From NCBI GenBank assembly GCA_047495785.1, contig JBLDXI010000002.1, positions 2,790,001 to 2,854,000 of the forward strand: a DNA stretch of 64,000 bases. Direction: 5' to 3'. The position numbers and the translations under genes are program-made. This stretch comes from Lepidodermella squamata (taxonomy: Eukaryota > Animalia > Gastrotricha). The notes under the pieces were generated by a model. That model saw nothing but the letters and a program-made list of their open reading frames with translations. It made no database searches and was not told the origin of the DNA. Below are positions 4,068-56,700 of this stretch, piece by piece. How positions within the stretch are numbered: the stretch's first letter is position 1; every line of letters begins with the position of its first letter.

Positions 4068-5711
4068 ATGAAGCTAGAATTATTATTCTTGACCCATATT
4101 ATACATCTGGTCTGCAGTTATGGGACAAGCGGTTACTTCGATTCGATAACAGGTAACCCTCAGGTACCGACTGACTGGGATAGAATTGTAAAAGATGCAC
4201 AGTTACCTGCTAGCTGCAAACTTGTCCATGTAAATTGAAATAGTTCAAATTTCATGCTGAAGATTAAGTCAATTTTCGCTTAGATTCGAGGTGTTCTTCG
4301 CCACGGCACGCGCTCTTTCGAGGAAGCCGATGAAGATGATTGCAAGAGTGCCATTAAGAAGATTGCGAAAGCTAATCCGAAGCCAGACTCGTCCAATGGT
4401 GGTCTCACAAAAAAACAGTTGAGCGCAATCCTGAACTGGAAAAGCTCAGCTCCAACCGAAAAGGAATTGTTGCCAAGAGGTTTCCAGGAGCACGCCTTTC
4501 TCGGCGAGAATTACTACAACATCACTGGAGGGCCTAATTCGTTAATCGACGTCAATACTGTCATTTTCGAAGCTTCGAATGTCGAGCGAACTATCGACAG
4601 CGCTGGTTCTTTTCGGGAGCGTTGGGCTAATCTAACGCTGAATCGAAACCTCAGCGCAGTTACTGTGAATGATGCTCGGAACCATTTTCACAAAAACTGC
4701 ACGGCTTACCGTATTCGAGTAGCGAAGAACGACTCAGCAGATCCAGAGAAGAAGCGGGCGAAGGATTCTGATGATGGGAGAAGCATCATTTACAAGGTTA
4801 ACTTTGTGAAACTTGGTCTGCACACAGAAGCATTAGGCTGGCGTGAGTCGGAATTTAAGATTTGATCGATTAAAATTTCAAGAAAAATTTGAATTTCAGA
4901 TGAAATCAAAGCTCTATACGTCATGGCCGCGTATGAAATGGCAGCTGACTACGATACAGGATCAGTTTTCTTGCCTCTTTTTGACGACGAAGATCTCGCG
5001 TACCTCGAATACGCCGAAGATATCGACAATTATTGGGTGAAATCCTACAGCTATGACGATGTTACCCGGCGAATGAGCTGTCCACTGACTACGCATATTT
5101 TCCAGACCGCAGAACGGGCTTACGCTAACAATACAGAGCCAAGCATGTTTTCATTCGCCCACCTCGAAGCGGTATTGCCAATATTCGGAGCCTTCGGGTT
5201 CTACCACGACCCGCCCGAAGTATTTCTAGCTAACACATCGAGGTATTTCTATCTAAATCGCCAGTTTGACACGTCAAAGATCGGAGTTTTCGCGACGAAT
5301 TTCGCTTTCCTATTCGTAAGAATTATTACTTAACATTTTACCTTGGGCAAAACTTTTTTATCGCAGTTCCAATGCCCAGCTGAAGCGTACCCACGCGATA
5401 AACTTGTAATGTTTGTGGCGAACGGGAAGCCAGAAGTGCTGGCTGCAGCTTGTCCGTATAATCTGGCGTGTCCGTTTGAACAGGTGCTACAGGGTTATCC
5501 ATACCCGACCGGCTTCGAAACTGTTTGCAATTACGAAGAAATATGCAGCCTAAATATAACTTCGACCACTACTGTTGCTACTACAGCTAATACAGGAGCT
5601 ACTCAACCTATTGTAGGAAGTTCAACCACGGCCAAAAGCAAGAGTAATTCGCTGCATTTCAATATTTCGATGATAGTAGTTCTAGCGGCGTTCGCGATAA
5701 GCCGAGTTTGA
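4068..5711 (+). CDS. MINPP1: Multiple inositol polyphosphate phosphatase-like histidine acid phosphatase, about 493 aa, probable GPI anchor
   Basis: Exons 4068-4229, 4284-4842, 4900-5315 and 5367-5711 join in frame. Signal peptide MKLELLFLTHIIHLVCS, catalytic C..VHIRGVLRHGTRSF, second motif FAHLE, then a Thr-rich stalk and hydrophobic C-tail. Confidence 0.8.
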
Positions 5712-30717: not shown

Positions 30718-31504
30718 CCCAAATCGATGCACCCTTTTTACAGTGTAAAAGTTGAACTTAGCAGCAAAAGTTGGCAGCACGCCAACGGAAGGTGATGCAA
30801 ATGTAATTTTTGTTTCTACCAACTAGTATTGGTCCATAACAATCCATAACAAATGATGAGACTTCCAGGATGAGTGGAAGTCAGTGCTGATGAAAACCTG
30901 CTGCCAAGTTCAAAGCGGTCGCTAGGCACTCTTCATCTCAGGGCAAAGCTGCGGTTCGGGATTCCCGCTATGTTGCAGAGGAAGTACCATTTCCTGTGGT
31001 GTGGCCAAAAGGACACCTGGAAGCCAGTCAGCAGTGAAGAGCAATTTACCACCAAATGCTCCCATTGCAAGCGCTAGTTTCACGCTGAGTGCGTTGGTAT
31101 TTATGTGCAGGTCGATAGGATTGTCTTTGGTAACGAAACGTTCTGGTCTCGTTGGCGAAAAATCGCAATTCATGCTTCTCAAGCCATACCTCTCGATTTT
31201 GTTTTTTTATTGACGCACAAATTTCGACTGTTTTTATCACGGTGATGAGGCGTTCACACTCTTTTTGAAGCGTTCGATATCAGCACGTTGCGGGAAGCAA
31301 GTTTTTGCATGAAACACCGCTTGACCGGTGCCGTGATTGTCGGTGATGCAAAACGAGACCAGCGGCATCTTGCGGTCGTTGACTTTGTGAGGGTGGTGAG
31401 TATGGTGAGTTATTAAAAAATTGAAAAAATATGAAATTTTTATATCTAATGGCATTGTTTTAGATATGACCTACCATCGATGTGCAAGACTTCAGGATAC
31501 AAAT

Positions 31505-32165
31505 CGTCGTCGGTGCGGCCAAAAGTAATATGTCCATCCAAAATCGAAAATGAGATTTTTACAGTTTCGAGCTCAGAATTTAACGCCGGTCATTATTCTG
31601 AAAACCGCATCTCAAAATTCGCCAGGGATCAAAAGTAATATGTCCACTTTCGTGACTTTTTTATCAGGTCAATTTGTCGGCAGAATCAACAGTAATATGT
31701 CCATGGCACGAGTTCGAAAAGGGCACCAAAAGTAATAAGTACAGCAAAAAATCACTCAATTGCGAGCAAAATGGTAGTGTAAAAATCGTCGAAAAAAATA
31801 GATGCGCGCATGAGGGATCGAACCACAGCAGCGCGATGTTGACGCCAAGTGAAAAATAATCCTCTTCCTTCACGCTTAAAAATAAAATAGCTTAAAAAAT
31901 GGATGCATGCACGGGGACTCGAACCGCCCTATAGAAAAATACCATAACAAAATAACAAAAAAAGTACAAAACAGTAATATGTCCAACGAATGTCTCAATG
32001 GCGCAAAAACGGTGCATCACCGGTAGAAATGGCCGGCGCCATTCGATCCGCCGTAATCAATTACCCCCTTGGTCGTCTCGGTGACATATTTTACTGACAA
32101 TTTCGAAAATAAAGCTGTTTAAATTATCACTCTTGGACATATTACTTTTGGCCGCACCGACGACG
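31505..32165. mobile_element. 661-bp non-autonomous DNA transposon (Sola1-like MITE)
   Basis: 32-bp perfect TIR CGTCGTCGGTGCGGCCAAAAGTAATATGTCCA, 4-bp TSD AAAT (31501-04 and 32166-69), internal repeats of AGTAATATGTCCA. Confidence 0.85.
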
Positions 32166-32367
32166 AAATTGGCCAGTTATTGCAGCCGTTGAGTCTGGAC
32201 GCAAATCGCAATAACATCGCTAGTTTCTTCATCGACCAGGACTAGAAAGTTGAGAAAGCGTTGCAGTGTTGCCCACAGGCGGTCTTCGACTTCGCTAATC
32301 CCTTTGAGCCCTGTAGATGGATGTGACAAAAGTTATATCGAAATTCTTTAGGTTTGTTTAACAAACT

Positions 32368-34046
32368 CTTGTGAGGAATAGTGTTATGGAGACCACACTC
32401 ATGGATAAAGCTGTTAACGCAAAATGGAAAATCAATAATTTGTGGATGAGGCAAAAAATCAGCAAAAAATGGTTATTTACAATTTATTACGCACCCTTTT
32501 TCAGCCACTCGCCATTACGCTCGTAAAAAATGCCAGTGGCAGGTAGTAGGCGCCAGTATTCTCCGGTTTGGATGCCGATTTTACCAATTTTGAACACATT
32601 TTCAGAATCCTCAGCTCATTTCCAATCGTATCCATGTAACAAAAATTTCTAATTTCCATTTTCGAGTCCTATTTTCTTGTAGATTTTAATTGTAGCCGCA
32701 TTCATGAGGTAACAGTTCACAAGCTTTATCGCGACAAAAATTCTTTAATTTAGTTTCCCATAGATAGAGAGATACTTTTCCAAGACAAAGAACCTATAAA
32801 AGTCTACGGCAAGATTTTTGAGAAATTATTTCGTTGCAAAACTTCACTGGGAATGTTAAGTTTAACGAATTCCTTGCATGTTTATTCGAATGTCGCTCAG
32901 CAGGGCGCTTAAGCAAATGCCTTGAAATATAGCTGAAAGTAAATAAAAGGCAAGCCCTTTTAATTTTCTAGGAAATTTCTAGGAGCACGCCATTTTCATG
33001 CTATTGGCTAAATGATAGTTTATATAAAGTTTATATAAATTGAATTTTCTTTATTGTGATACCTAGGAAAAATATCAATGACTTGAAAATTGTCCCTAAA
33101 ACGAGCCTGTCTTATGAACGGCTCAATTAAATCTAAATTAACCAGTAAATATTATGTAAGCACAATTGCGCGCGTAGAATGCTGGCGATTGGAATTCGCA
33201 CAACGGATGTCTCAGGCCCATAACTATCGAAGGAAAACTATACTTTTAATACAGTGATAGTGTGGTAGTGATCTACAGTGATAGAAAATCGAGGACCATT
33301 CGATAAAACCGTTGTATTCTTTTTTAGTATATTTGATTATTAATTCTTCCTTTGATAATAACATTTCTCACTCAGCATACCTGGAGACGCTAATTTTCAG
33401 TAATTTTTCGGGAAATTTAACCTGGCAACGCTGATTACCTTCCTGCATAACGACTCTGAGCCATGACGCGTGAATTTTGATAGATTCCCAGCTGAGATTT
33501 CGCGAGAATGATTCCGACTATAAGGATCTAAATTTCATTCATTAGACGAAATCTAATAGCGTTACGTGAAACTCATGCTAAAAGCACCAGTGTAACCAAC
33601 AACAACAGAATCGGCAACGGTACAACTGTTACTTGTTTCACCTCACAGCTTTCTTCAGAGCGGTAAATATTGCGTCACCAAACGTAAATGATTAGGTGGA
33701 TATTAAGGCCGAATTCTACGCCTTGAAAAATCTGCAAGAAAATAGGACTCGAAAATGGAAATTAGAAATTTTTGTTACATGGATACGATTGGAAATGAGC
33801 TGAGGATTCTGAAAATGTGTTCAAAATTGGTAAAATCGGCATCCAAACCGGAGAATACTGGCGCCTACTACCTGCCACTGGCATTTTTTACGAGCGTAAT
33901 GGCGAGTGGCTGAAAAAGGGTGCGTAATAAATTGTAAATAACCATTTTTTGCTGATTTTTTGCCTCATCCACAAATTATTGATTTTCCATTTTGCGTTAA
34001 CAGCTTTATCCATGAGTGTGGTCTCCATAACACTATTCCTCACAAG
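32368..34046. mobile_element. 1679-bp non-autonomous foldback-type DNA transposon with about 320-bp TIRs
   Basis: 32368-32687 and 33727-34046 are near-identical inverted repeats starting CTTGTGAGG. 8-bp TSD AACAAACT (32360-67 and 34047-54); no internal ORF. Confidence 0.92.
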
Positions 34047-34204
34047 AACAAACTTCGTAATTGATCCGAAAAATTTTGGATATCTTTACGTGTAGGCTGG
34101 CGTGCCGTCGATTTGCGAAGCATTCGGTCTGTTGCTGCCGGTTTCTGGTGTCCGTCGATAGCCGCCTCAGCGATGATACGATCAGCCTTCGAGGCCTTTG
34201 ACAT

Positions 34205-36532
34205 CGTTCGTGTTGCGACGTAAGAGACCGCGTTAGGCAGTACTTCCATGCTGTTTGTAACAAAATACTTGGTATAAGCTACTTTTTATTTGCCGGTAAT
34301 AGCTTCATTATTTCGGCGCATCTGACACCGAACGGTTGCAACGCCTACCAGAATGCGAACTACGCACAAACGCTTCAGAACATTTCTCCGTTATCATGGC
34401 TAAATTCTTAATATCAACCAAATTTATCCTCCCTTCGAGCGTAGGCTAGGATAATTCTATCAATTTTATAATTATAATAATATAATTTTTATTTTGTAAT
34501 TCCATCAATTCTATCAATATCCATAGGGTAAACTCATAGGGTAACGTCTCTGTCTCTGTCTCTCACTCTCTCTGCATAGTCTTGTTGAACCATGACTATA
34601 ACCACTTATTGTTCAAACATGACCAGAGTCTGCTTTCGAATGGGCACAATTTTTGGTTTCCAATTCCTGGAGCGGCCCATGCAGTTATCATCACGAAAAG
34701 TGCATATTACAGAATTATGGACTATGAGCCAATTTTTATACTATAATGAAAATGCCAAGAGTGCACTTTTTACGCTATTTTGTGGTTACCCTTCTCCATC
34801 ATCTCGCAGCTCACAGGCAATTCGATATCCTTCTTAAATTTTATTGCATAAAGCGATCAAGTATTTTCCTAATCGCATTTCATTCAAATATGAGCCGTTG
34901 AGCTGTTGCGACAAACTGAACTACAACCTTGCGCGAAGCGGAATCGCTAAAGTAGATTCGCAGCCACATGAGGTCAATAGTGGTATCACCCTAAGTTTGT
35001 ATCATTCGAGTTGGTATCATTCGAGAATTGCCAGGATGACTTTTATCCCTGCATCCTAAGAAAGATAGCGGATTGTCTTGGTAATGTGATCTGGTTAGCG
35101 ATTTAGCTATGATTGATGATTAGCAATTAGCAACGAAACCGCCGTATTCGAGGAATGCTTGACATGCAACTCGCTTGGCATGATTCGTATGCGACAAAAC
35201 GTGACCCACCATTTAAGTTTAGGTTTCACGATTTTTGCGCGGACTTCTTAATGAAATAGTACGTCACATTTAGTCTGATGGTGTAGAACCGACTGCAAAA
35301 TGCCACAGACTAATAGTTATCAAAGAAAGCAATCATGCGCAGAAGTATAATTTACAATGCGCATCCACTTGATCATTTTAGCTGGAATCTTAACTATAAT
35401 TAGGTCAAGCAGGAATGCCTAAGGCACTTCAATCTAATGGCGAAAATGCAGAAAAACTTTCAGGGCAGTGTGATCCAAAGTGTGACTTCCAAGTCATTTT
35501 GGCACTTTTTTGATTTTTTTACTCAGGTGTGACTCCGATTTAATTATATACTAAGCCGAGCTTGACTCAGAAAAGAGTCACAAAAATTAACCTAGCTAAA
35601 CTTGAATCCGGCTCTCAGTTTGACTCCAAAATGAGATGCTTTAACTCCACTCTGCTATAACCTTTTACTTGTCACTGACGTAAACTTGCCCAAATCAGAG
35701 TTATTCAACGACGCTAACGCTCCGATATCTGTGGCTTATCAATTTAGTTATCGTTAGTTAGTTAATTAGTTAACCAATGGAGTATCACCGTCATCGATTC
35801 TTCAAAAGTGTTAGTTCATTTCGGTTTTAAGTGATACATTTTCAGAAACCCTTTAGGGTTTGGGAGTGTCCAGAGTTTGCCATTGATTTGTACGAAAACT
35901 AGATTTGTACTGAAAGATGGTGATTTTTTGTTTGATCAACACGGCTTGTTTAATTTGCTATAACTTGGATTCGGTCCGGATCTCTTGAGCGAAATTTAGG
36001 GGAGTAAACCATTCTTCACGGGCTTTTCAACGGTGTAAGGTATGTGAGAATCGGAGCCGAAATGACCGCGCTGTGCTGGCTCTTTCGATATATTCAACCT
36101 GTTATCGCCATTTCTGTTAAACAAGGTGTGATGAATTATTCTCTTAGTTTCATTTCCTTGGTTCGTTTTCAATTATTTCGCTGCATTGAAAATAAAGATT
36201 TACGGCACCGAGTCACGGATAATAATAGTTTTTCATTGGTCACGGCAGCTCGTTTTCCGCCAGTAAAATCTGCAATCAAAGAATTCCAGAAGAACGCGAG
36301 AAAACTTAGAAGAATGATAGCAAAGGCTGTATTTCTCTTACCTCTTCAAGAGTCCGAGGACGCACCATAGCAATCGCAGCTAATGGCTAATGGCAATTTT
36401 ATAGCCCTTGAACCAAAGATAGTAATTTGGGATGCAACCGCTCCGCAGTTGTAAACAACCGCAATATAGCGGTATAATGATATATAGAAATATGCGCTAG
36501 TACTGGCGGTCCCTTACGTCGCAACACGAACG
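34205..36532. mobile_element. 2.3-kb non-autonomous DNA transposon with 4-bp TSD (Sola-like)
   Basis: 27-bp TIR CGTTCGTGTTGCGACGTAAG(A/G)GACCGC with one mismatch and TSD ACAT (34201-04 and 36533-36). Removal restores the host frame AAM|SKASKA. Confidence 0.85.
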
Positions 36533-36719
36533 ACATAGCCGCCGTCCTTCTCAGCCAGTCAGCCTCGGTTCGCAGGTGATTGTGTTCCATGGAGCGCGAA
36601 GTAACAGTGTAGCCCGTATCATCTTTGCCTTGAACTTCGTTTAGTTTAACATGCACTTGGAAAAGGCTCTCCTTCTTCTTTGCTCTTGTTAACTGTTCCC
36701 CTCCTTCGTCGCGGTGCTT

Positions 36720-37162
36720 CCCAGACCGGCACAAAATGAGCTGAAATGTGCTGGAACTGATTTCATCAGCTGAAAAACGCTGAAATAAGGCATGGCGCCC
36801 TCTTCACCCACTGAAATACGCTGGACCTGATTTCTGGGCTGCGCACATTTCGGCAGATTTTTAGCCAAGTCATGATTTTTTGCTGTACATCTACGCACTG
36901 TGCTGACATACGCTGAAATGAGCACGCGGCGACATCGACAAGCTGAAATACGCTGAAAGAGCATGATGCCACGCGCTGAAATGAGCTGAAATAAGTTTTC
37001 CTCGTCTGAAAAGAGCTGAAATAATAAGCTGAAATACGCTGAAATAATTATAAGCTGAAATACGCTGGAAAAACGTTAAGCTGAAATCGACTGAAATAAT
37101 TTGCCAGCTTATTTCAGCTTAATTATTTCAGCGTATTTCAGCTTATTTCGTGCCGGTCTGGG
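36720..37162. mobile_element. 443-bp EnSpm/CMC-like MITE
   Basis: Termini CCCAGACCGGCAC...GTGCCGGTCTGGG, 2-bp TSD TT, and more than a dozen subterminal GCTGAAAT motifs in both orientations. Removal restores SR|KHRD. Confidence 0.85.
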
Positions 37163-37270
37163 TTTCTCGAGCACCAGCACGCATAAGTCCGTTCGACGAC
37201 AGAGTCCCCTAAGGGCGTGAAGTTCTTCTTGTCCTTGTTCTAGCATATCAGACAGTTACATCGAAAGTTC

Positions 37271-37460
37271 TTTGAAAATAAATAATTACCTTATTATTGA
37301 ATGCCTGTTTCTTTATGCTCTGGGGCATAAAAAAATATAAAAATCTTTATTGTTGTCCTCTTTCCAAATAACAAAATAACAAAATAAAAAATAACTCGAC
37401 AAAATAACTCTCTAATAATAAGCATAATAAGCATAATAAGCCCGAATAGATTGTTTTCGG
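37271..37460. mobile_element. 190-bp AT-rich insertion flanked by a 9-bp direct repeat
   Basis: CGAAAGTTC at 37262-70 and 37461-69, with internal short tandem repeats (ATAATAAGC, AAAATAAC). Removal restores the transposase frame. Confidence 0.55.
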
Positions 37461-40104
37461 CGAAAGTTCATTGATTCCTCCATTTCAGTAAAATTTTTAA
37501 AAGCGGTACCTACAGCTATCGCCGGCCCAGCGTAGTTGGGAACTTCATGCACAGAAACAGCCTGGGGCCCAGGATTCATTTCTACGTCGTTCGCTAGTAG
37601 TAAAACGCGATGATGTAAGTTCCAGTCATACAAAATGAATTTGGCAGATGGCTGACAGAAATGATATGTCTCCAACACGTAGTTTTCGTTGCCTTTAATG
37701 AAACACAACCTCGGATAAAGAACTTGCTGCTTCGAATCATATGAAAGCTTCATCAGAACAATCAAAGCAATAGCATAAACCCAGATGGAAAGTCCATACA
37801 CATGTAACGTGGTTCTGCGATAGGAATAGAGACCAAGGAAAATCCAAATGGCTAAAACCGATAAAAGGTAGACGCGGAATATGATCATGAGAACCAGACG
37901 AGGAAATGTGTAACAAAGAAAGGCAACAGCGAAAACTAAGAAGACTTTACGCCAGTACTTCGATAGATAACCAAGTAGCAATGTCATCGCCAGCGATAAA
38001 AAACACCATGAAATCTTCAGCAAAACCAGTATCATGAAAAAACAACCTTCGACAGGCTCTGCGCCAAAGCAAATATGCAAGTGGTGGACACAACTTGCAC
38101 GAGTAAAGACAAGACCATTCGATAGCACGTTCAAAAAATCAAACAATCCCTGAAACAGGAGGCTGAGTCCGGCTTCATAACGTAATACCGGCTGTAATCA
38201 TCAGCATCTAAAACTACTTCATCCACAAAAGCCACATCCAACACCGCCGACTGATAGCAGGTGATACTACAGAAAAACAGCAAGAATCAAATAACTAATG
38301 ACAAGGGTAACGTTCCCACACCTCCGGTGCAGTTTGACAGTACTCAACCAATCACCAATGTAATACCAATGTGTTTTACAAATGCAAGCCAAAGATTGAA
38401 CCGATTTGGCTATCCAACCGTCTTCTACTTTCCTTTTATTCGGATTAGCCATCTTTAATTATCATCTTCTCATCATTTCCTCATCAACAGCTGAGCACCA
38501 CTTCCTTGCTATTCAATGCCGCTTGATTATAGGTGCTTTGCCGCTCGCGGCCGTCACTGAACGTCACTGAATCTAGATCCACTTGAGACTCGAATCCGAA
38601 CATTTATAGCCGTAACTATAGACGCTATTTTGACTTTAAAATATTTTTCTGTTTATATCATAATTGAAAATTATTGTCCCATTTAAATTGAGAACAATGA
38701 AAATCCCTTGCGCTCGCCATTTCAGAATGTGGGGAAGCCGCTACCCATTAATGTTGCAATAGTGTAGATAAGCAGCCTGGCGACACGCTTTTGCTAACTC
38801 CGATGGATAAAAGCAATAATCATACGCAGAAACGACAGCTTAGGGGATGATTGCCTAAAGAATTTGCCGTCGGTAAGGAGTAACGAAATAGCCCTTGGCC
38901 CTTGGCTTACTTCGGCACCGCCACAGCCACGACCTCCTTCCAATCATTCCATCCAATCAGCTTCTCCATCCCTCGGGAAAATAATTTGCCAATAATTGCA
39001 GCTATTTTGAAAGAAAAGTAAAAAATACCTACCGCTGATCCAAAAAATTGACAAAAATTCCTGTTTTTGAGCCATGTAACCAAATTTTCTATAAATAGGG
39101 CATACATCTTGATAAATCGAAAAATGAGATAAATAACGTAGACAATTTTCAAACTAGGCAGTGAAGTAGGCGCGAGAATATTGCTGTGTTTCTTAAAATT
39201 TTAAACATTATTTAAAAGCTTATTAATGGGCTTGTTCGGCTGGAAATAATCGATTTTCTCCGCATCTCACCTTAATTTCTTCAGCTTGGATCCTCAGACC
39301 TAAAAATAATAAATTCAAATGAGCATTCTCATCAAAGAAATCGAAGCCAAAATTGCAATCAAATAAGGAAAATATTTCAATCAAAATAATTTTTCGAGCA
39401 GGAAATGGATCTTTTTATTTGACTTAGCTGCCAATTGATGCTAGAAAATTCATTTCTAATGAGTCCAATCTCATGAAGCGATAAGAGGAGCCATGATCAC
39501 TGTAGCTGATAATATATTTGATTGATATATTAGGAATTCTTTAACATTTTTTGGGTCCAAATTTAGCGCTACGGCCAACTTAATTATTTTAGTGATAAAA
39601 ATGACAGAAATCTCTCACCGCCATTACCTTAATAATTATTACCGTCAATACTTACGCAATATACCTTCAACACCTCAATAATTACCTCAAAAATGACAAT
39701 AACCTTCAAATTGAAACTCGGATTTCCAACTATTAAAATTTAATTTGGCATATTCATCGCTTGCGGCGATTGCGCAACACGTAATACTACTGTGTGGTCT
39801 CAATTACTATGAACAGTCAGAAATAAATATTTGCTTGTAGTGTAAAAGCGGCTATAATTTAGGATAGACTGCTTACTCATGAGAAAAAGGGTGCTACGCC
39901 ATGGGCGCCGGATAGTCAGCTGATTCATCAGCGCTTGGAGGAAAAGTAAACAAAATATTCGATCGTTTTTTTACTGGTTCCGTGACGGTTTCGATTTCCC
40001 CAAGGGTTTCGTTGACGGATCCAGACAGAGGAAACGCTGATTATTTGTTCGAAATTTGTGAAGGAATTTTGACTGGTGTTATAAAAAATGGTTTCGCAGT
40101 CACG

Positions 40105-46093: not shown

Positions 46094-47297
46094 CTAGCGG
46101 TGGGGCCGTGGACCTACAGAGAGTCCGTAAAGTCCTGATGGCACTATATCAGTATATAGTATAGTACATTTTATATAGCAAGGCTAAAAATCAATAATCT
46201 GTCATTTTATTGATCGGTTATAATAATAATGTCAGTGCGAGAAATGAAAGAAAAGCCGAATTGAGCACTGTTTGAAGAGCACTGCGAGGCCGATCAGAGC
46301 GAATCCACTGCTGTCAGAGAGAAACGAAGTGCTCTGAATACAACAAAAGCAAAAAATGAAGGAAAAAGGCGTTTTTTACTATTAAAGATAATGCTCTCGC
46401 CATTTCTTATGAATTCGCGGAATGAAAGATGCGCGCATGAGATAGATCTATGCGTATAATCGGGGTATGTATTCGCGCGTGCGGGAAAAAAATATGTGCG
46501 ACAATTGGCCATATATTTGTGTGGTATGACATGAGTAAAAAGTTTATATCTGAACGGAGCCAACCGAGAATTACTAGTCGGAACGAGCCGGAGGCGAGTT
46601 GCGATGAGTAAATCGAGTGCGGCGATTTCAGATATGAACGATTTACGAATGTTATACCGTAAAATATCGAATTGGCTACTCCACCTATATTTTTGGGGAT
46701 AACTCTATATTTTTATCAAAAACTCATTGCCGCGATTTTCTTCTTGTTTCTTAAAGATGAGACAGAAGCTTCGAGAGCTTCCAGGCCTAATTGTTCAGGT
46801 CAGTCTTTTTTGGACCACAACCATGAAGGATAAACAAAGCAGGCTTCTGCTGTCGTTCGTCGTTCGTGGATCGCTTCCTAATCGAAAACTTGCAGCTTGA
46901 TCTGACGACCTAACCAGTTTGGCCACAAATTAGCGCTGAAAGTGATTAGCGCCAAGGGACGGCGAGAGTAAGGACGCATCACCGGCAGGTTGAGTGTTAG
47001 ATGGTCGAGGCGTACCTATGCTAAAGACGTCATAACCCCTGGCAGGTTTGGAATATTTAGAGCGGAAATGCATTTTAGCAGTTATTGGAGCAGAGAGGAA
47101 AGTACCGCTAGGGATGGTAGGAATCATCGCTACCAGTTCAACTGAGTCAAAGACCAAATGGGGCTCTTGTTTCATTAACTTAATCAGCTCTACTGTCCTA
47201 CTTCGCTCTCTGGGTTTTTGGGCTCTCTGGCTTTTTTACATTAGCAAATTCGCTTCGGAGGGTAATTTCCAAAGCTCATTAACGCCGCTATTATGAT

Positions 47298-47481
47298 CCA
47301 TTTGACGGTAAGTATTTTATCGCAGCACGCAAACAATAGAAAGCAATTTTACCGCACGCGATTTGTTGTATGCTTGAGTGTTGCAGTTTAGTGCCGTTTA
47401 CGGTAAATTATTTACCGCCACTAGAGAACAATGGCGAGATGGAGTTACCGTCAAATGGAGAGTTGTATCGAAACGCTAGCG
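47298..47481 (-). mobile_element. Internally deleted, inverted copy of the 50427-50898 MITE family
   Basis: Shares CCATTTGACGGTAA..TTACCGTCAAATGGAGA ends and the CTAGAGAACAATG.CGAGATGGAG segment. Confidence 0.75.
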
Positions 47482-48146
47482 ACGAGTATAGCAGAAAGAT
47501 TATTCCTGCTACACGAGTAATTGGAAGAGTCTAACATGACGGAGCGAACGAAAAAGCATACAAAATGGTGGTATTATGGTCGTATATGCTTAATAAATGA
47601 AAATCCACCGGGTTGATTTTGAAAACCTACGGTACTCCGTTAGATCCCTCCACGAGTAATCGTTCTGAGACTTTTCAACCCGTTTCACCGTACCTTAAAT
47701 TATTAAATCAATTAAAACCAGTCCTGAGTGAACAATTGCCCGCAGGACACACAATTTTCCGAAGCTATTTGTTCTGCGAATGAAATATCAAGAATTCCCA
47801 CGGTATATAGCCGTATTCTTCATTGCAAAGTAAAACAAACCAACAAATGCAGGTTTTAACCGCATTGAATTCTGGGAAACTGCGTATAATTGTTGCAAAA
47901 GCTACGTACTCCAGTTCAAAAAGAATAAGTTCACATTTTACCCAGCATACTCCTTATTATTATATCCTAATCCATACAAAAGACGCCTTATCGATTTTTT
48001 CATTGCGCTTGTTTTTTTAGCAAACTATGCAGATATGTTCCAAAGCGCTGCACAAAATTTCGAGGTAGAAACCTGGCCCCTTTGCGAACCGCACGGTAGA
48101 ATTCCCTTTACAAGGAGATTAATGTTCTTTGCAGTAATTCTTATAC

Positions 48147-50349: not shown

Positions 50350-51012
50350 ATTTATTTATTTATTTATTTGACTCAAAAAGGACCGAGAACAAAACAACGA
50401 TCGGTAGCAATTAAAGGCGTCTCACTCGTTAGCGTTTCGGTATAACTTTCCATTTGACGGTAACTCCATCTCGTCATTGTTCTCTAGTTGCGGTAAATAG
50501 TTTACCGTAAACGGCACTACACTGCGACACTAAAGCGTAAAATACTCGCGTGCGGTAAAATTAATTTCTCTGCGGTAATTTCAGCTCATATTATCTTGTA
50601 GGAACAGTAGGAATTACAAGCATATTATGGAGGAATAGAAATGGAGTTGGAACTGCGCTCAGGTTATTGGTGTGTGCGCGCGCAGCCGCTCGCGTACTTA
50701 CAATACAGCGTGTTACGCAACCGCTGTGGCGCATTGCTGCGAGCCGCAAGTGCTTCTGCGGTAAAAATAACGCCGCGTGCGGTAAAAATTAACTTACGCG
50801 GCGCCGTTAGTTTTACCGCACGAGCATTAAGTAACCTGGTTTGCGTGTTGCGGTAAAATACTTACCGTCAAATGGAGACTTATACCGAAACGCTAACGCA
50901 CTGTAGAAATTAAGAATTTTGTTCTATCCAAACTAGCAACTTATGTCTTGAAATTATTAATTGAACCAGCCACAACATCATATGGTAGGCTATTCCACAA
51001 ATGGACGGAAAA
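50350..51012 (-). mobile_element. 5'-truncated CR1/L2-type LINE 3' end, interrupted by a MITE
   Basis: C-terminal motif FSVHLWNSLPYDVVAGSINNFKT, then a 3' UTR and (AAAT)5 tail at 50350-50369. Confidence 0.75.
50427..50898. mobile_element. 472-bp MITE with 4-bp TSD (Sola-like)
   Basis: TIR CGTTAGCGTTTCGGTATAA..TCCATTTGACGGTAA, TSD CACT (50423-26 and 50899-902), internal GCGGTAAAA repeats. Confidence 0.85.
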
Positions 51013-53713: not shown

Positions 53714-56700
53714 CAGTGTGGTCTGAAAATAGTAAAGGAACGCGCATTTCTTCAAATAATTGCGTTTTCAGATAATGATCACGAGGCTAATCAATTTCTT
53801 CAATCTATTGATCAACTTCAATTCAATGGCGCACATCTGATTAGCCAATTTCGAGGGGGAAAAGGAAATCAGTCCTTATAATTTAAAAATCATGAAAACA
53901 AAGTCGTAATTTGAAATAAGGATTAAGAGAGGAGATGCTATGTTTAAGAGAAGGTTCCTGGTTGCACCTGCGAAAGATGACCCAAAATATCAAAGACCTT
54001 TCCTATATGTATATAGTTGGCCCCAAGCATAGCCCTGTAAGCAGAAAAGCCATATTTAGACTAACCCTCACGGAGTCATCGTGCAGGTGGATCTTCGCTA
54101 AGCATGTGTCCCTACCGCCAATATCGCCGAATTCACTAATATTTCAATGATAAAAAAGCAGATTTTCAGGTCAAGAAATTTTAACGAAGGAAATTTCCCA
54201 GGTTCTCAAACTGTTAATAACAAGTTCAACAATACCTTAAAAAGGCACTTTAAATTCGTCTTCTACCGAAGAATTCCAATTAATTTGGAGTTCAAACCTT
54301 TCGTAAATACTTTGACGTTTACGTAGAATTAGCTCTTTTTTCCTAGATTCGCGTCTTCACCTTCACTTATGCCTCACCTCAATAACTAACTAGGCCAGAT
54401 AATTGAAGGTATGAAAAGGCATATTATTTTTTCTGTCGCAAAAATAAGTCCTAATCATTGTGCTAGAACATTTCACTTTTTCAAATTTTCTTCCGGGCTT
54501 TGGTAAGGGCCCTTCTCATACTGCGTGTCTCCTTCACGGATATGTAATTAGGTAACGCTAAACCGCGTTAGTTTATAGCTTCGATAAACAAGTTTCTGAA
54601 TTCTTTTTAATAAAGTCATTTTCCATTTAAAATAATAATTTTTTTGAAAATGAAAAAAGCTGATGGAGAAAATGAACTCCAACTACTGCGTAGCTACAAG
54701 GTCATGTGCCCATCACATGATAACCATCATTCAATTTAATTTTCAACTACGATTCGCGAATTTTAAGGAGTAAAATGGCGAGCGTCGCAAAAATCTGAGT
54801 GAGCGTCGCAATTTTGAGTGACGTGCGGTGGACACGCAAAATCTGAGTGAATGTCGCGATAATCTGTGTTACGTCGCAATACTTGAGGACCGTAGCAATA
54901 AGCTGAGTGAATGTCGCAACTCAATTTATTTATCGCTCTTTATTAACACTCCTCACTCGAGAGAATCACGTATTATCATTTTTTAGCGTTACGGACCGGC
55001 TGTTGCCGAATAGGTACTGAAATTTTGTCAGCTTTCTTAGCTTTCTCAACTTTCTTAACTTCGCCGCGCTTTTTCGGCGGCTCAGCTTCGGCCCCAGGTT
55101 CGGACAATTCAGGCGGTTGGCGAGCCAAAGCCGAGGCTGTATTTGCTGGCCGACCACGTTTTCGCTTTTTCTCTACCAGCTGTGTAAGGCGAGCTTTGTC
55201 CGGAGCTGTCTCCACCTTGAGCCGCAGGGCCATGCCAAGTGAATGACAGCAGGTGTGTTCTTTCGCGTAGGTAGAACATGAACAGGAGAACGCATGTTGG
55301 CACGAAGCAGTTTTCTTATAAGTTGCGCATTCAGCCGGGCATATGAAATCGATTTTCTTGGCGACGTGGAAAATTTTGCGGGTGAAATCGGTAAAATGAT
55401 CGAAATCGATCCAATCTATTTGCTTGATTTCGCGGCGGTAATTATTAGCCACTTCCTTCGTCATATCGTTTTCGACAAAATCGGCGTAAAAGACGTAGCT
55501 GAGTAAGGAACTGTTTTTGGCCTCGTGCAGCTTTACGTCCTTGTCCTGCCACAGCACGGCATCAGCCCAGCGGGTATCATTAATCACTGGAATTAGCTGA
55601 AATTTCTTGCAATTGATGTTTTCCGGGTCGCGATCGTGGGACCATTGAGGCAACATGACAGACATGACGATGCGGATGAATTCGGGTATGGGCAGGCGCT
55701 GTCTGAAAGTAAAATCCCGTTTTATAATTTCATTTATCGCCTCGATCGCATTATTAGTCGATGGTAAGCCGCTCGCTACGCCTTCAAAAAACGGACGTAA
55801 AACCGGGTCATTGACCGTATCATTAAGCCAGTCCAGGAAAGCAGCTGTTTCAGGGTACTCGCCCCACTTGGCGATAAAGAGCTGAAGAGCGCGCTCAAAC
55901 ACCGCTTCTGAGCCAGCCACCTGCAGGGTGGTCAAATCCAAGCGCACTCGGTCGCGCAAATCCTTCTTAATCGACGCCAGCTTTTTGTCCGCGTTGCGTA
56001 CAACGTGCGCCCAGCAGTTGGCCTGGATCACTTGACCAAACACTTTGACGATCGCGTCCGCAATCGCCGATGCGCCATCACGCACAACAAGGGGAGGCGG
56101 CGGCATAGAATTTCCTGAAATTATCACAATAATATATAATATATTACACCAAAAATAATAAGTAATTTACCGAAAACCAGCTCATAACTTGATTTTACTG
56201 TGCCGAGTAGATCGATGTAATCGTCCTTAGTTTCTCCACTGACAACTGAAACAGCAACAGGGTGGAAGGTGTTGCTTTTGTCGGAAGTGCCGATTACTAG
56301 GACAGGATTGCCGTGATACATTAGTTTGAACGTGCCATCAACATGCAGTGGCCCGCCATGCCCAGCCATGCTTAGCAGCTGCTTGGTCGTAAATACAACA
56401 CGAAACTGCTGCTTCTGCTTACCCACTCGCGGCTTTACATCACAGCCAATGACGAAGCTCTCGTGGTTTGATGCCGGGATAGCCTCGTGTTGTTTTGCGA
56501 GATCGACAAAATCTTGCAGGGACCACTTGCTTCGATTACGGCCACCTGCCTCAAGTAGCCTCATGGCCCAAGCGACTTGACTTTTCTTGATAGAATAGGC
56601 GGTAATTTGTTCGTCTTTCAGTTCCATCAAAGCCGTCCACATCTTGGACGGCTTTTTAATATCTTTTTGCTCACGAATTTCGCGAATTTTTTCGATGACG

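Follow-up and report, generated by a model that had tools for sequence, protein, structure and literature searches.

A 2A/StopGo motif between a hydrophobic leader and the transposase in a Mutator-type DNA transposon family of the gastrotrich Lepidodermella squamata

Organization of the locus

We analysed a window of 64,000 nt from Lepidodermella squamata (assembly GCA_047495785.1, contig JBLDXI010000002.1, positions 2,790,001-2,854,000 of the forward strand), whose minus strand carries a decayed copy of a Mutator-like (MULE) DNA transposon. In this copy, one open reading frame (ORF) joins a hydrophobic leader, a 2A/StopGo tract at which the ribosome is predicted to skip a Gly-Pro bond, and the start of a FAR1-type transposase. 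The window copy is called subfamily B below, its younger relatives subfamily A, and the C10 copy a third subfamily (C); motif searches covered the whole 121-Mb genome.

A first-pass annotation of the window had described hydrophobic segments followed by a 2A in the minus-strand ORF 38146-37412. This ORF indeed reads HHRVLLLANDVEMNPGP at 37615-37565, with NDVEMNPGP at 37591-37565 as claimed, and 193 codons precede and 51 codons follow the Gly-Pro skip site in one continuous frame. The FAR1-like start that had been placed shortly past the 2A was also recovered, since VGTAFKNFTEMEES runs from 37513, 17 codons beyond the final Pro. The four to five helices given for the leader agree with the count by eye (4-5 hydrophobic stretches), and a Kyte-Doolittle scan of the ORF has peaks resembling transmembrane (TM) segments at residues 25-43, 71-89 and 114-132; if translation starts at the conserved Met87, however, about two TM-like helices are left. 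The proposed continuation into MULE catalytic motifs holds for the first Asp region only, because no homologue of the second-Asp, Glu and SWIM-finger part of the transposase was found anywhere in the window. No terminal repeats of the copy were found either, and a subfamily A terminus used as query matched nothing in the window. The window copy, correctly called decayed in view of its frameshift, insertions and 3' truncation, is therefore a dead, 3'-truncated relic, and the interest of this fossil lies in the family to which it belongs.

Occurrence of the motif in the genome and selection on the tract

The tract of the window copy ends in NPGP preceded by D(V/I)Ex, reading DVEMNPGP at 37588-37565, and the identical motif is present in four subfamily A copies. 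The Leu-rich lead-in ..DWNLHHRVLLLAN.. upstream of the motif is kept in both A and B, so that the full consensus match with a Leu-rich lead-in, as first annotated, stands. For the 2A of Theiler's virus, an identical DVEMNPGP core with His before it is listed at ~99% cleavage (PMC8623073), and 14 of 17 predicted class-A peptides were found to be active in cells (PMC12338488). When D[VI]ExNPGP was searched for with a degenerate DNA pattern, 13 sites were obtained, against 0 for a reversed control pattern and a chance expectation, by our own estimate, of ~0.2 per genome; the motif is therefore not a product of chance. Five of these sites belong to the MULE family and eight lie outside it, seven of the latter heading ORFs of long interspersed nuclear elements (LINEs) behind hydrophobic leaders. 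A 2A interrupted by a phase-0 intron directly after the Gly codon gave 0 matches in the genome pattern search.

Comparison of the two subfamilies permits an examination of selection at the codon level. Over the 2A exon, subfamily A and the window copy share 58% identity in protein and ~71% in DNA. Within HHRVLLLANDVEMNPGP, 15 of 51 bases differ between A and B; 13 of the 17 codons are affected, third positions account for 12 of the differences, and no amino acid is changed. When 15 substitutions were placed in the tract under neutrality, none of 200,000 simulations changed fewer than 3 amino acids, and the product of the single-site synonymous fractions for a tract without replacements is ~6e-10. 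We conclude that the peptide was translated, and under strong constraint, while the subfamilies diverged. In the regions around the tract, the proportion of synonymous differences (pS) is saturated at 0.74-0.87 and that of nonsynonymous differences (pN) is 0.23-0.34. Each of three flanking blocks has fewer replacements than expected from neutral simulation: 20 observed versus 26.3 expected in the TM block (p ~0.004), 26 versus 33.3 in the middle block (p ~0.003) and 13 versus 18.4 in the block after the 2A (p ~0.004). Judged from this codon comparison, purifying selection on the protein sequence of the 2A tract is extreme; the leader is coding, under weaker purifying selection and freer to change than the 2A. 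The first-pass annotation had asked whether TM segment, 2A and MULE occur together in one ORF under purifying selection; the comparison of A and B shows such selection on the TM block, the 2A and the block after it.

The transposon family

Copies of subfamily A lie on C48, C32, C60, C64 and C7, with a fragment on C34, and show 98-99.9% mutual identity. The unit is 13-15 kb long and is bounded by 231-nt terminal inverted repeats (TIRs), 81% identical, which begin CGTCGGCGCCGTGCAG and which in the C48 copy are found at 1329-1556 versus 16120-15891 of L013 and L020 joined. Direct repeats of 4 bp (AAAT, ATGG and AAAT) are present at the three complete copies on C48 (L013+L020), C64 (L015+L022) and C32 (L012+L018), respectively; with their differing flanks, the three copies are insertions of a TIR transposon that arose independently. 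The unit has a single gene with recognizable domains, that of the leader, 2A, FAR1, MULE and SWIM transposase, and the other ORFs of the 14.8-kb element gave no Pfam domain. The early view of a cut-and-paste transposon family agrees with these TIR-bounded units and their MULE-domain transposase, and by its domains and long TIRs the family is assigned to the Mutator superfamily. The C48 copy, and no other, also carries at L013 2490-2968 a miniature inverted-repeat transposable element (MITE) of ~480 nt with AAATCAAATC repeats and an 8-bp flanking duplication, ATGCTAAC; its confinement to this copy indicates a very recent insertion.

The subfamily A exons match FAR1, ZSWIM1-3 RNaseH-like, MULE and ZSWIM1/3-helical in Pfam. 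The C64 copy provides the best MULE match of the genome (52.8 bits in the genome scan), which has roughly 110 other loci with a MULE domain; its last exon, an uninterrupted run of 462 codons that holds CSCG..CRH, scored 39.5 bits for MULE (PF10551) versus a cut-off of 27.6 and 49 for ZSWIM1-3_RNaseH-like versus 27.2. Of the MULE domain, the window copy has retained just the first third. FAR1 scored 22.2 bits versus a cut-off of 28.1, this domain being split by an intron and matched only at profile positions 27-87, and the SWIM profile gave E = 0.45, CSCG..CRH being readable in the sequence. Pfam returned no match for the 58 residues past the skip site; they are labelled FAR1 start from a reading of the sequence against those profile positions that the next exon lacks. 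In the databases, the closest proteins are Hydra MULE-like fragments with 25-31% identity; the homology search with the 462-aa last exon found only two Hydra MULE-like proteins, both lacking their N-termini.

One exon holds the leader, the 2A and the FAR1-like start (VG..F.N..E.E) in A as well as in B. It ends ..QA(Y/F)NNK, and the GT..AG phase-0 intron that comes next has the same position in the two subfamilies, its length being 56 nt in A and 50 nt in B. The architecture of leader, 2A and FAR1-MULE-SWIM transposase is thus co-linear, with the junction lying inside one exon. The first-pass annotation had allowed that other copies might lack the TM and 2A region; in subfamily A it is present and shares an exon with the FAR1 start. 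Subfamily C, with ~80% DNA identity to A, is dead and still reads HHRLLLLANDFEMNPE.. (HHRLLLLANDFEMNP..) at the place of the 2A.

The leader and its start

Detectable protein homology between A and B starts just upstream of Met87, and the sequences farther upstream are barely alignable. Counted from Met87, the leader has ~107 residues, comprising two TM-like helices and then a Cys/His segment. The frame had at first been extended upstream to ATG 38452; it does run from there through four stops, but this part is probably non-coding, because only two short DNA islands are conserved between ATG 38452 and the ORF, A and B being otherwise unalignable. RNA evidence consisted of two runs with sequence, both as assembled contigs, and contigs cannot prove absence. 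One of them, X1, is RNA-like in its poly(A) ends and uneven depth, and for subfamily A one of its contigs ends in poly(A) 15 nt past the AATAAA of the island that holds the upstream ATG. This ATG is thus likelier to belong to a regulatory or processing signal than to be a coding start. Immediately before the open frame, TGTTTCAG/GG looks like a 3' splice acceptor or a trans-splice acceptor. Pfam matches on pieces of the leader and 2A (Urease_beta, Styelin and Sbt_1) were discarded as noise.

Features of the window copy

The coordinates of the features are collected in Table 1. Between the FAR1 fragments at 36531 and 34213, ~2.3 kb of foreign DNA is inserted, and another insert of ~640 nt also separates pieces of the transposase. 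A second MULE-domain match in the window, at 56196-56348 on the minus strand (25.2 bits, below the cut-off), lies in a 370-codon open frame and is unrelated to the copy studied here.

Table 1. Features of the subfamily B copy, in window positions; a slash within a sequence marks the skip site, an insertion point or a splice-like boundary
Feature	Position	Strand	Remark
DNA island TAATTAA.GATG..TAA.CCGAATAAAAG, holding ATG 38452 and AATAAA	38425..38470	-	conserved between A and B; in A at L013 3000-3040
Acceptor-like TGTTTCAG/GG immediately before the open frame	38147..38157	-	conserved between A and B
244-codon open frame: hydrophobic leader, 2A and first 51 codons past the skip site	37412..38146	-	subfamily B window copy
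Met87, sole ATG common to both subfamilies (LM(I/F)(I/L)IFR(V/I)YL)	37886..37888	-	minimal leader start
Two TM-like helices (residues ~88-107 and ~116-133) around a YRRT loop	37748..37885	-	
Conserved Cys/His segment from helices to 2A, ..YVLE.(Y/F)HFCQP..K.I..DWN.(HH)	37616..37747	-	
2A/StopGo tract HHRVLLLANDVEMNPG/P	37565..37615	-	predicted skip between Gly 37570-37568 and Pro 37567-37565
Transposase start past the skip site, QAVSVHEVPNYAGPAIAVGTAFKNFTEMEESMN	37463..37564	-	1-nt frameshift near 37463
Insertion of ~100 nt with GCTTATTAT repeats	37335..37431 (approximate)	-	splits ..FGLIM/PQSIKK.. relative to subfamily A
50-nt GT..AG phase-0 intron after ..QAFNNK	37240..37289	-	position of the subfamily A 56-nt intron (L013 4122-4177)
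FAR1-type exon fragment NKDKKNFTPLGDSVVERTYACWCS	37166..37239	-	
MITE of ~440 nt with CCAGACCGGCAC inverted ends	36722..37165 (approximate)	-	interrupts the FAR1 exon
FAR1-type fragment GKHRDEGGEQ..MEHNH..	36531..36725	-	69% identity to subfamily A
FAR1 exon end KASKADRIIAEAAIDGHQKP..SDQLRS (KASKADRII..SDQLRS)	34052..34213	-	85% identity to A
Nested 1.68-kb element with 321-nt inverted ends, 100% identical; a very young foldback-type insertion	32367..34047	.	lies inside the decayed MULE
RNase-H-like exon fragment NDPEDRLWATLQRF..	32165..32299	-	69% identity to A
..YPEVLHIDG (first catalytic Asp region; HIDG ~31520-31473) and NDRKMPLVSFCITDNHGTGQ (31383-31324)	31324..31520	-	

LINEs of the same genome with a 2A

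Of the eight motif sites outside the MULE family, five belong to two related LINE families (DIEMNPGP in L023, L028 and L031; DIETNPGP in L025 and L026), in which a leader, DIE(M/T)NPGP, C2H2 fingers and reverse transcriptase (RT) follow one another. No apurinic/apyrimidinic endonuclease (APE) domain precedes the RT in these elements, and their layout resembles that of R2/NeSL; the retrotransposon 2As of the literature come from elements of the APE type. Another LINE family, with two sites (L030 and L033), has the order leader, DIESNPGP, PHD and APE, like the CR1/Crack layout in the literature, and its leader is open for 330+ codons with ~6 TM-like segments. The remaining site, DVEHNPGP (L027, C11:1196954-1196976, minus strand), lies in a short frame that stops interrupt on either side; it may be a remnant of a decayed element or have arisen by chance.

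All three LINE leaders have TM-like segments. Between the MULE leader and these three leaders, no similarity was detected (z -0.2 to 1.3 versus shuffles), and 46 of 300 shuffles did as well as the 7-residue identity FDFLNVL shared by the window leader and one LINE leader. A recent LINE fragment is thus disfavoured as the origin of the leader. The early concern that the 2A segment might be part of an unrelated LINE inserted upstream is made improbable by the same result, and also by the single exon that it shares with the FAR1 start.

Proposed mechanism and alternatives

We consider the following course of events rather probable from the sequences. One spliced gene of the living family would encode, in order, a leader of ~107 residues or longer, comprising TM-like helices (two at the least) and a Cys/His segment, a class-A 2A/StopGo peptide ..RVLLLANDVEMNPG/P, and the FAR1-MULE-SWIM transposase. 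After translating the leader, the ribosome would not form the Gly-Pro bond at NPG/P, so that the leader would be released with the end ..NPG; the ribosome would continue, and the completed transposase would begin with Pro and then enter the nucleus. We infer both the skipping and the insertion of the leader into a membrane from sequence features. The first-pass ideas of a free nuclear transposase and of its tethering to the endoplasmic reticulum upon incomplete skipping are conjectural in the same way. The role of the leader could be to direct translation to the endoplasmic reticulum (ER), to control the dosage of the transposase or to act as a separate helper protein; in this connection, 2A has been proposed to lower the amount of the downstream product relative to the upstream one (PMC3708506).

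Several observations weigh against this proposal. Some of them concern the peptide and its surroundings: in both subfamilies the residue before Asp is Asn (ANDVEMNPGP), not the usual Gly or His, and the 4-bp target-site duplication (TSD) is atypical for Mutator, in which 8-11 bp is usual. Consensus sequences have been given with Gly, or in cardioviruses His, at the position before Asp (PMC3708506, PMC12338488), and G, H and C occur there among listed viral 2As (PMC8623073). In addition, the motif does not suffice without a suitable upstream context, and several 2As of retrotransposons are inactive despite good motifs (PMC3708506). Relatives of the leader were not found when the 244-aa ORF was compared by phmmer with 1.84 billion representative proteins, the one match being a spurious match to a repetitive protein, and a feature search of the ESM Atlas with the leader yielded no relatives.

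Other observations of this kind concern the integrity and expression of the gene. Every copy in the assembly bears a lesion, namely, in subfamily A, a 2-nt deletion in C48, a TAA and a 6-nt deletion in C32, a TAA 25 codons before the 2A in C64, a 355-nt deletion in C60, and in C7 a truncation and a 180-nt deletion that removes the 2A. Common to all A copies are also a TGA that lies upstream of the conserved Met and, inside the leader, a stop-bearing 165-nt MITE (L013 3583-3747), so that the model needs this MITE to be spliced out. Its length is a multiple of three, it starts with GT and ends with AG, and its removal leaves the frame intact, so that it appears to behave like an introner; its family has >40 genomic copies, including those at 50744-50898 and 47297-47482 of the window. 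If translation is taken to begin at the conserved Met and the MITE to be removed by splicing, the A copies have no coding lesion in common, and this pattern of private lesions fits a recently intact master gene. Among the X1 contigs, from which absence is not provable, none covers the leader or the 2A exon and none has a sense splice junction, and the sole spliced contig over the gene is antisense. This 830-nt contig (L013 4162-5103, C48 copy) skips 4563-4616 (54 nt) and ~4842-4901 (60 nt), both with CT..AC ends; these are GT..AG introns of the strand opposite to that of the transposase, whose sense introns the contig retains. It may represent spliced antisense RNA of the element. The sense introns predicted for this copy are L013 4122-4177, 4602-4658 and 4830-4918.

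If the peptide does not act in skipping, the tract would be a conserved N-terminal motif that happens to match a 2A, and a fusion of leader and transposase would be made. Conservation by itself does indicate function and not skipping, and the Asn in place of Gly or His, like the inactivity of several motif-bearing retrotransposon sequences (PMC3708506), suits this explanation. We regard it as unlikely all the same, since the full motif, with its low chance expectation and empty control, would have to arise by accident, since seven of the eight other sites stand between a hydrophobic leader and a LINE enzyme, the position known for 2As of non-long-terminal-repeat (non-LTR) retrotransposons (PMC3708506), and since a nuclear DNA-binding enzyme permanently joined to TM helices is hard to square with transposition. 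A working 2A might, on the other hand, serve only to strip off upstream translation such as host read-through, the leader having no membrane role of its own and owing its hydrophobicity to T-rich DNA. The sense strand of the leader is 39% T, and A and B barely align upstream of Met87. The TM and middle blocks are nonetheless under purifying selection with differences mostly at third codon positions, and unrelated LINE leaders of the same genome are likewise rich in TM segments, so that a leader of this passive kind also seems improbable to us.

Far less probable is a leader and 2A that came as the 5' fragment of a LINE landing upstream of the transposase and that are foreign to the MULE. LINEs with a leader and a 2A do exist in this genome, and one of their leaders shares FDFLNVL with the window copy; against this, alignments of the MULE leader with the LINE leaders are no better than shuffled ones, the 2A lies in the exon of the FAR1 start in A and B with a decayed motif at the same place in C, and the tract was selected throughout the divergence of the subfamilies. 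Even if it had been captured anciently, the module would now be integral to the gene.

With skipping that frees the transposase taken as the preferred reading, a broader possibility concerns the combination of leader and 2A, since a TM-type leader and a 2A stand before the enzyme in the MULE, in the LINEs with zinc fingers and RT and in the LINE with PHD and APE. That this cassette is a convergent, general and host-specific expression device of selfish elements is a speculative idea, for which we would not claim more than a minor chance. If it is true, the leader might dock the translating mRNA at a membrane, for instance that of the ER, out of reach of cytoplasmic silencing or decay, or meter the dose of the enzyme, StopGo would free the enzyme for the nucleus, and DNA transposons would be a new class of StopGo users.

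Comparison with known systems

2A/StopGo peptides are known in RNA viruses, non-LTR retrotransposons and a few cellular genes. The viral class-A 2As found in foot-and-mouth disease virus and Theiler's virus, T2A and P2A likewise have a Leu-rich tract followed by D(V/I)ExNPG/P and lie between two functionally different polypeptides of one ORF, the DVEMNPGP core of Theiler's virus being identical (PMC8623073). The MULE tract differs in belonging to a nuclear, intron-bearing DNA-transposon gene and in its Asn before Asp. The 2As of non-LTR elements (L1Tc/Ingi; CR1, Crack and Rex1; Odon et al., 2013, PMC3708506) are likewise borne by mobile elements; they follow an N-terminal segment and immediately precede the first domain with an enzymatic or DNA-binding function. 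Their downstream product is APE/RT, whereas here it is a DDE transposase of the FAR1-MULE-SWIM type, and the leaders show no detectable homology; no RT or APE was found downstream of the 2A in the MULE family, these domains being confined to the other 2A-bearing families.

In sea-urchin NLR-type proteins (Roulston et al., 2016, PMC4981915), a hydrophobic, targeting-type N-terminus is also combined with a 2A, giving two fates for the downstream protein. There, the short 2A-like peptide is itself the signal sequence at the extreme N-terminus, whereas the MULE 2A is at least ~105 residues from the start and lies behind separate TM-like helices. Mutator/MULE elements and their relatives FAR1/FHY3 and ZSWIM1/3 share with the present family long TIRs and an RNase-H-like MULE/ZSWIM1-3 core that scores above the Pfam cut-offs, and apparently also a FAR1-like N-terminus and a C-terminal CxC..CxH SWIM motif; the family differs from them in its 4-bp TSD, instead of 8-11 bp, and in the leader and 2A ahead of the DNA-binding domain.

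The first-pass annotation had been aware of no description of this architecture for MULEs, and this holds as far as the literature was searched: in full-text literature, not covering the supplementary tables of two large 2A surveys, we found no report linking 2A/StopGo to a DNA transposase. Recent 2A surveys, a structural 2A study and Odon et al. (2013, PMC3708506) mention retrotransposons only and no DNA transposons.

Significance

The saturated synonymous sites around a tract with zero replacements are clean evolutionary evidence of a peptide that is translated and needed. The Asn-Asp-Val-Glu core adds a variant that is a candidate for use in biotechnology. For the biology of these elements, the family offers a natural system in which to study the role of the N-terminal product of mobile-element 2As, and also the production of a nuclear enzyme downstream of membrane-type helices.

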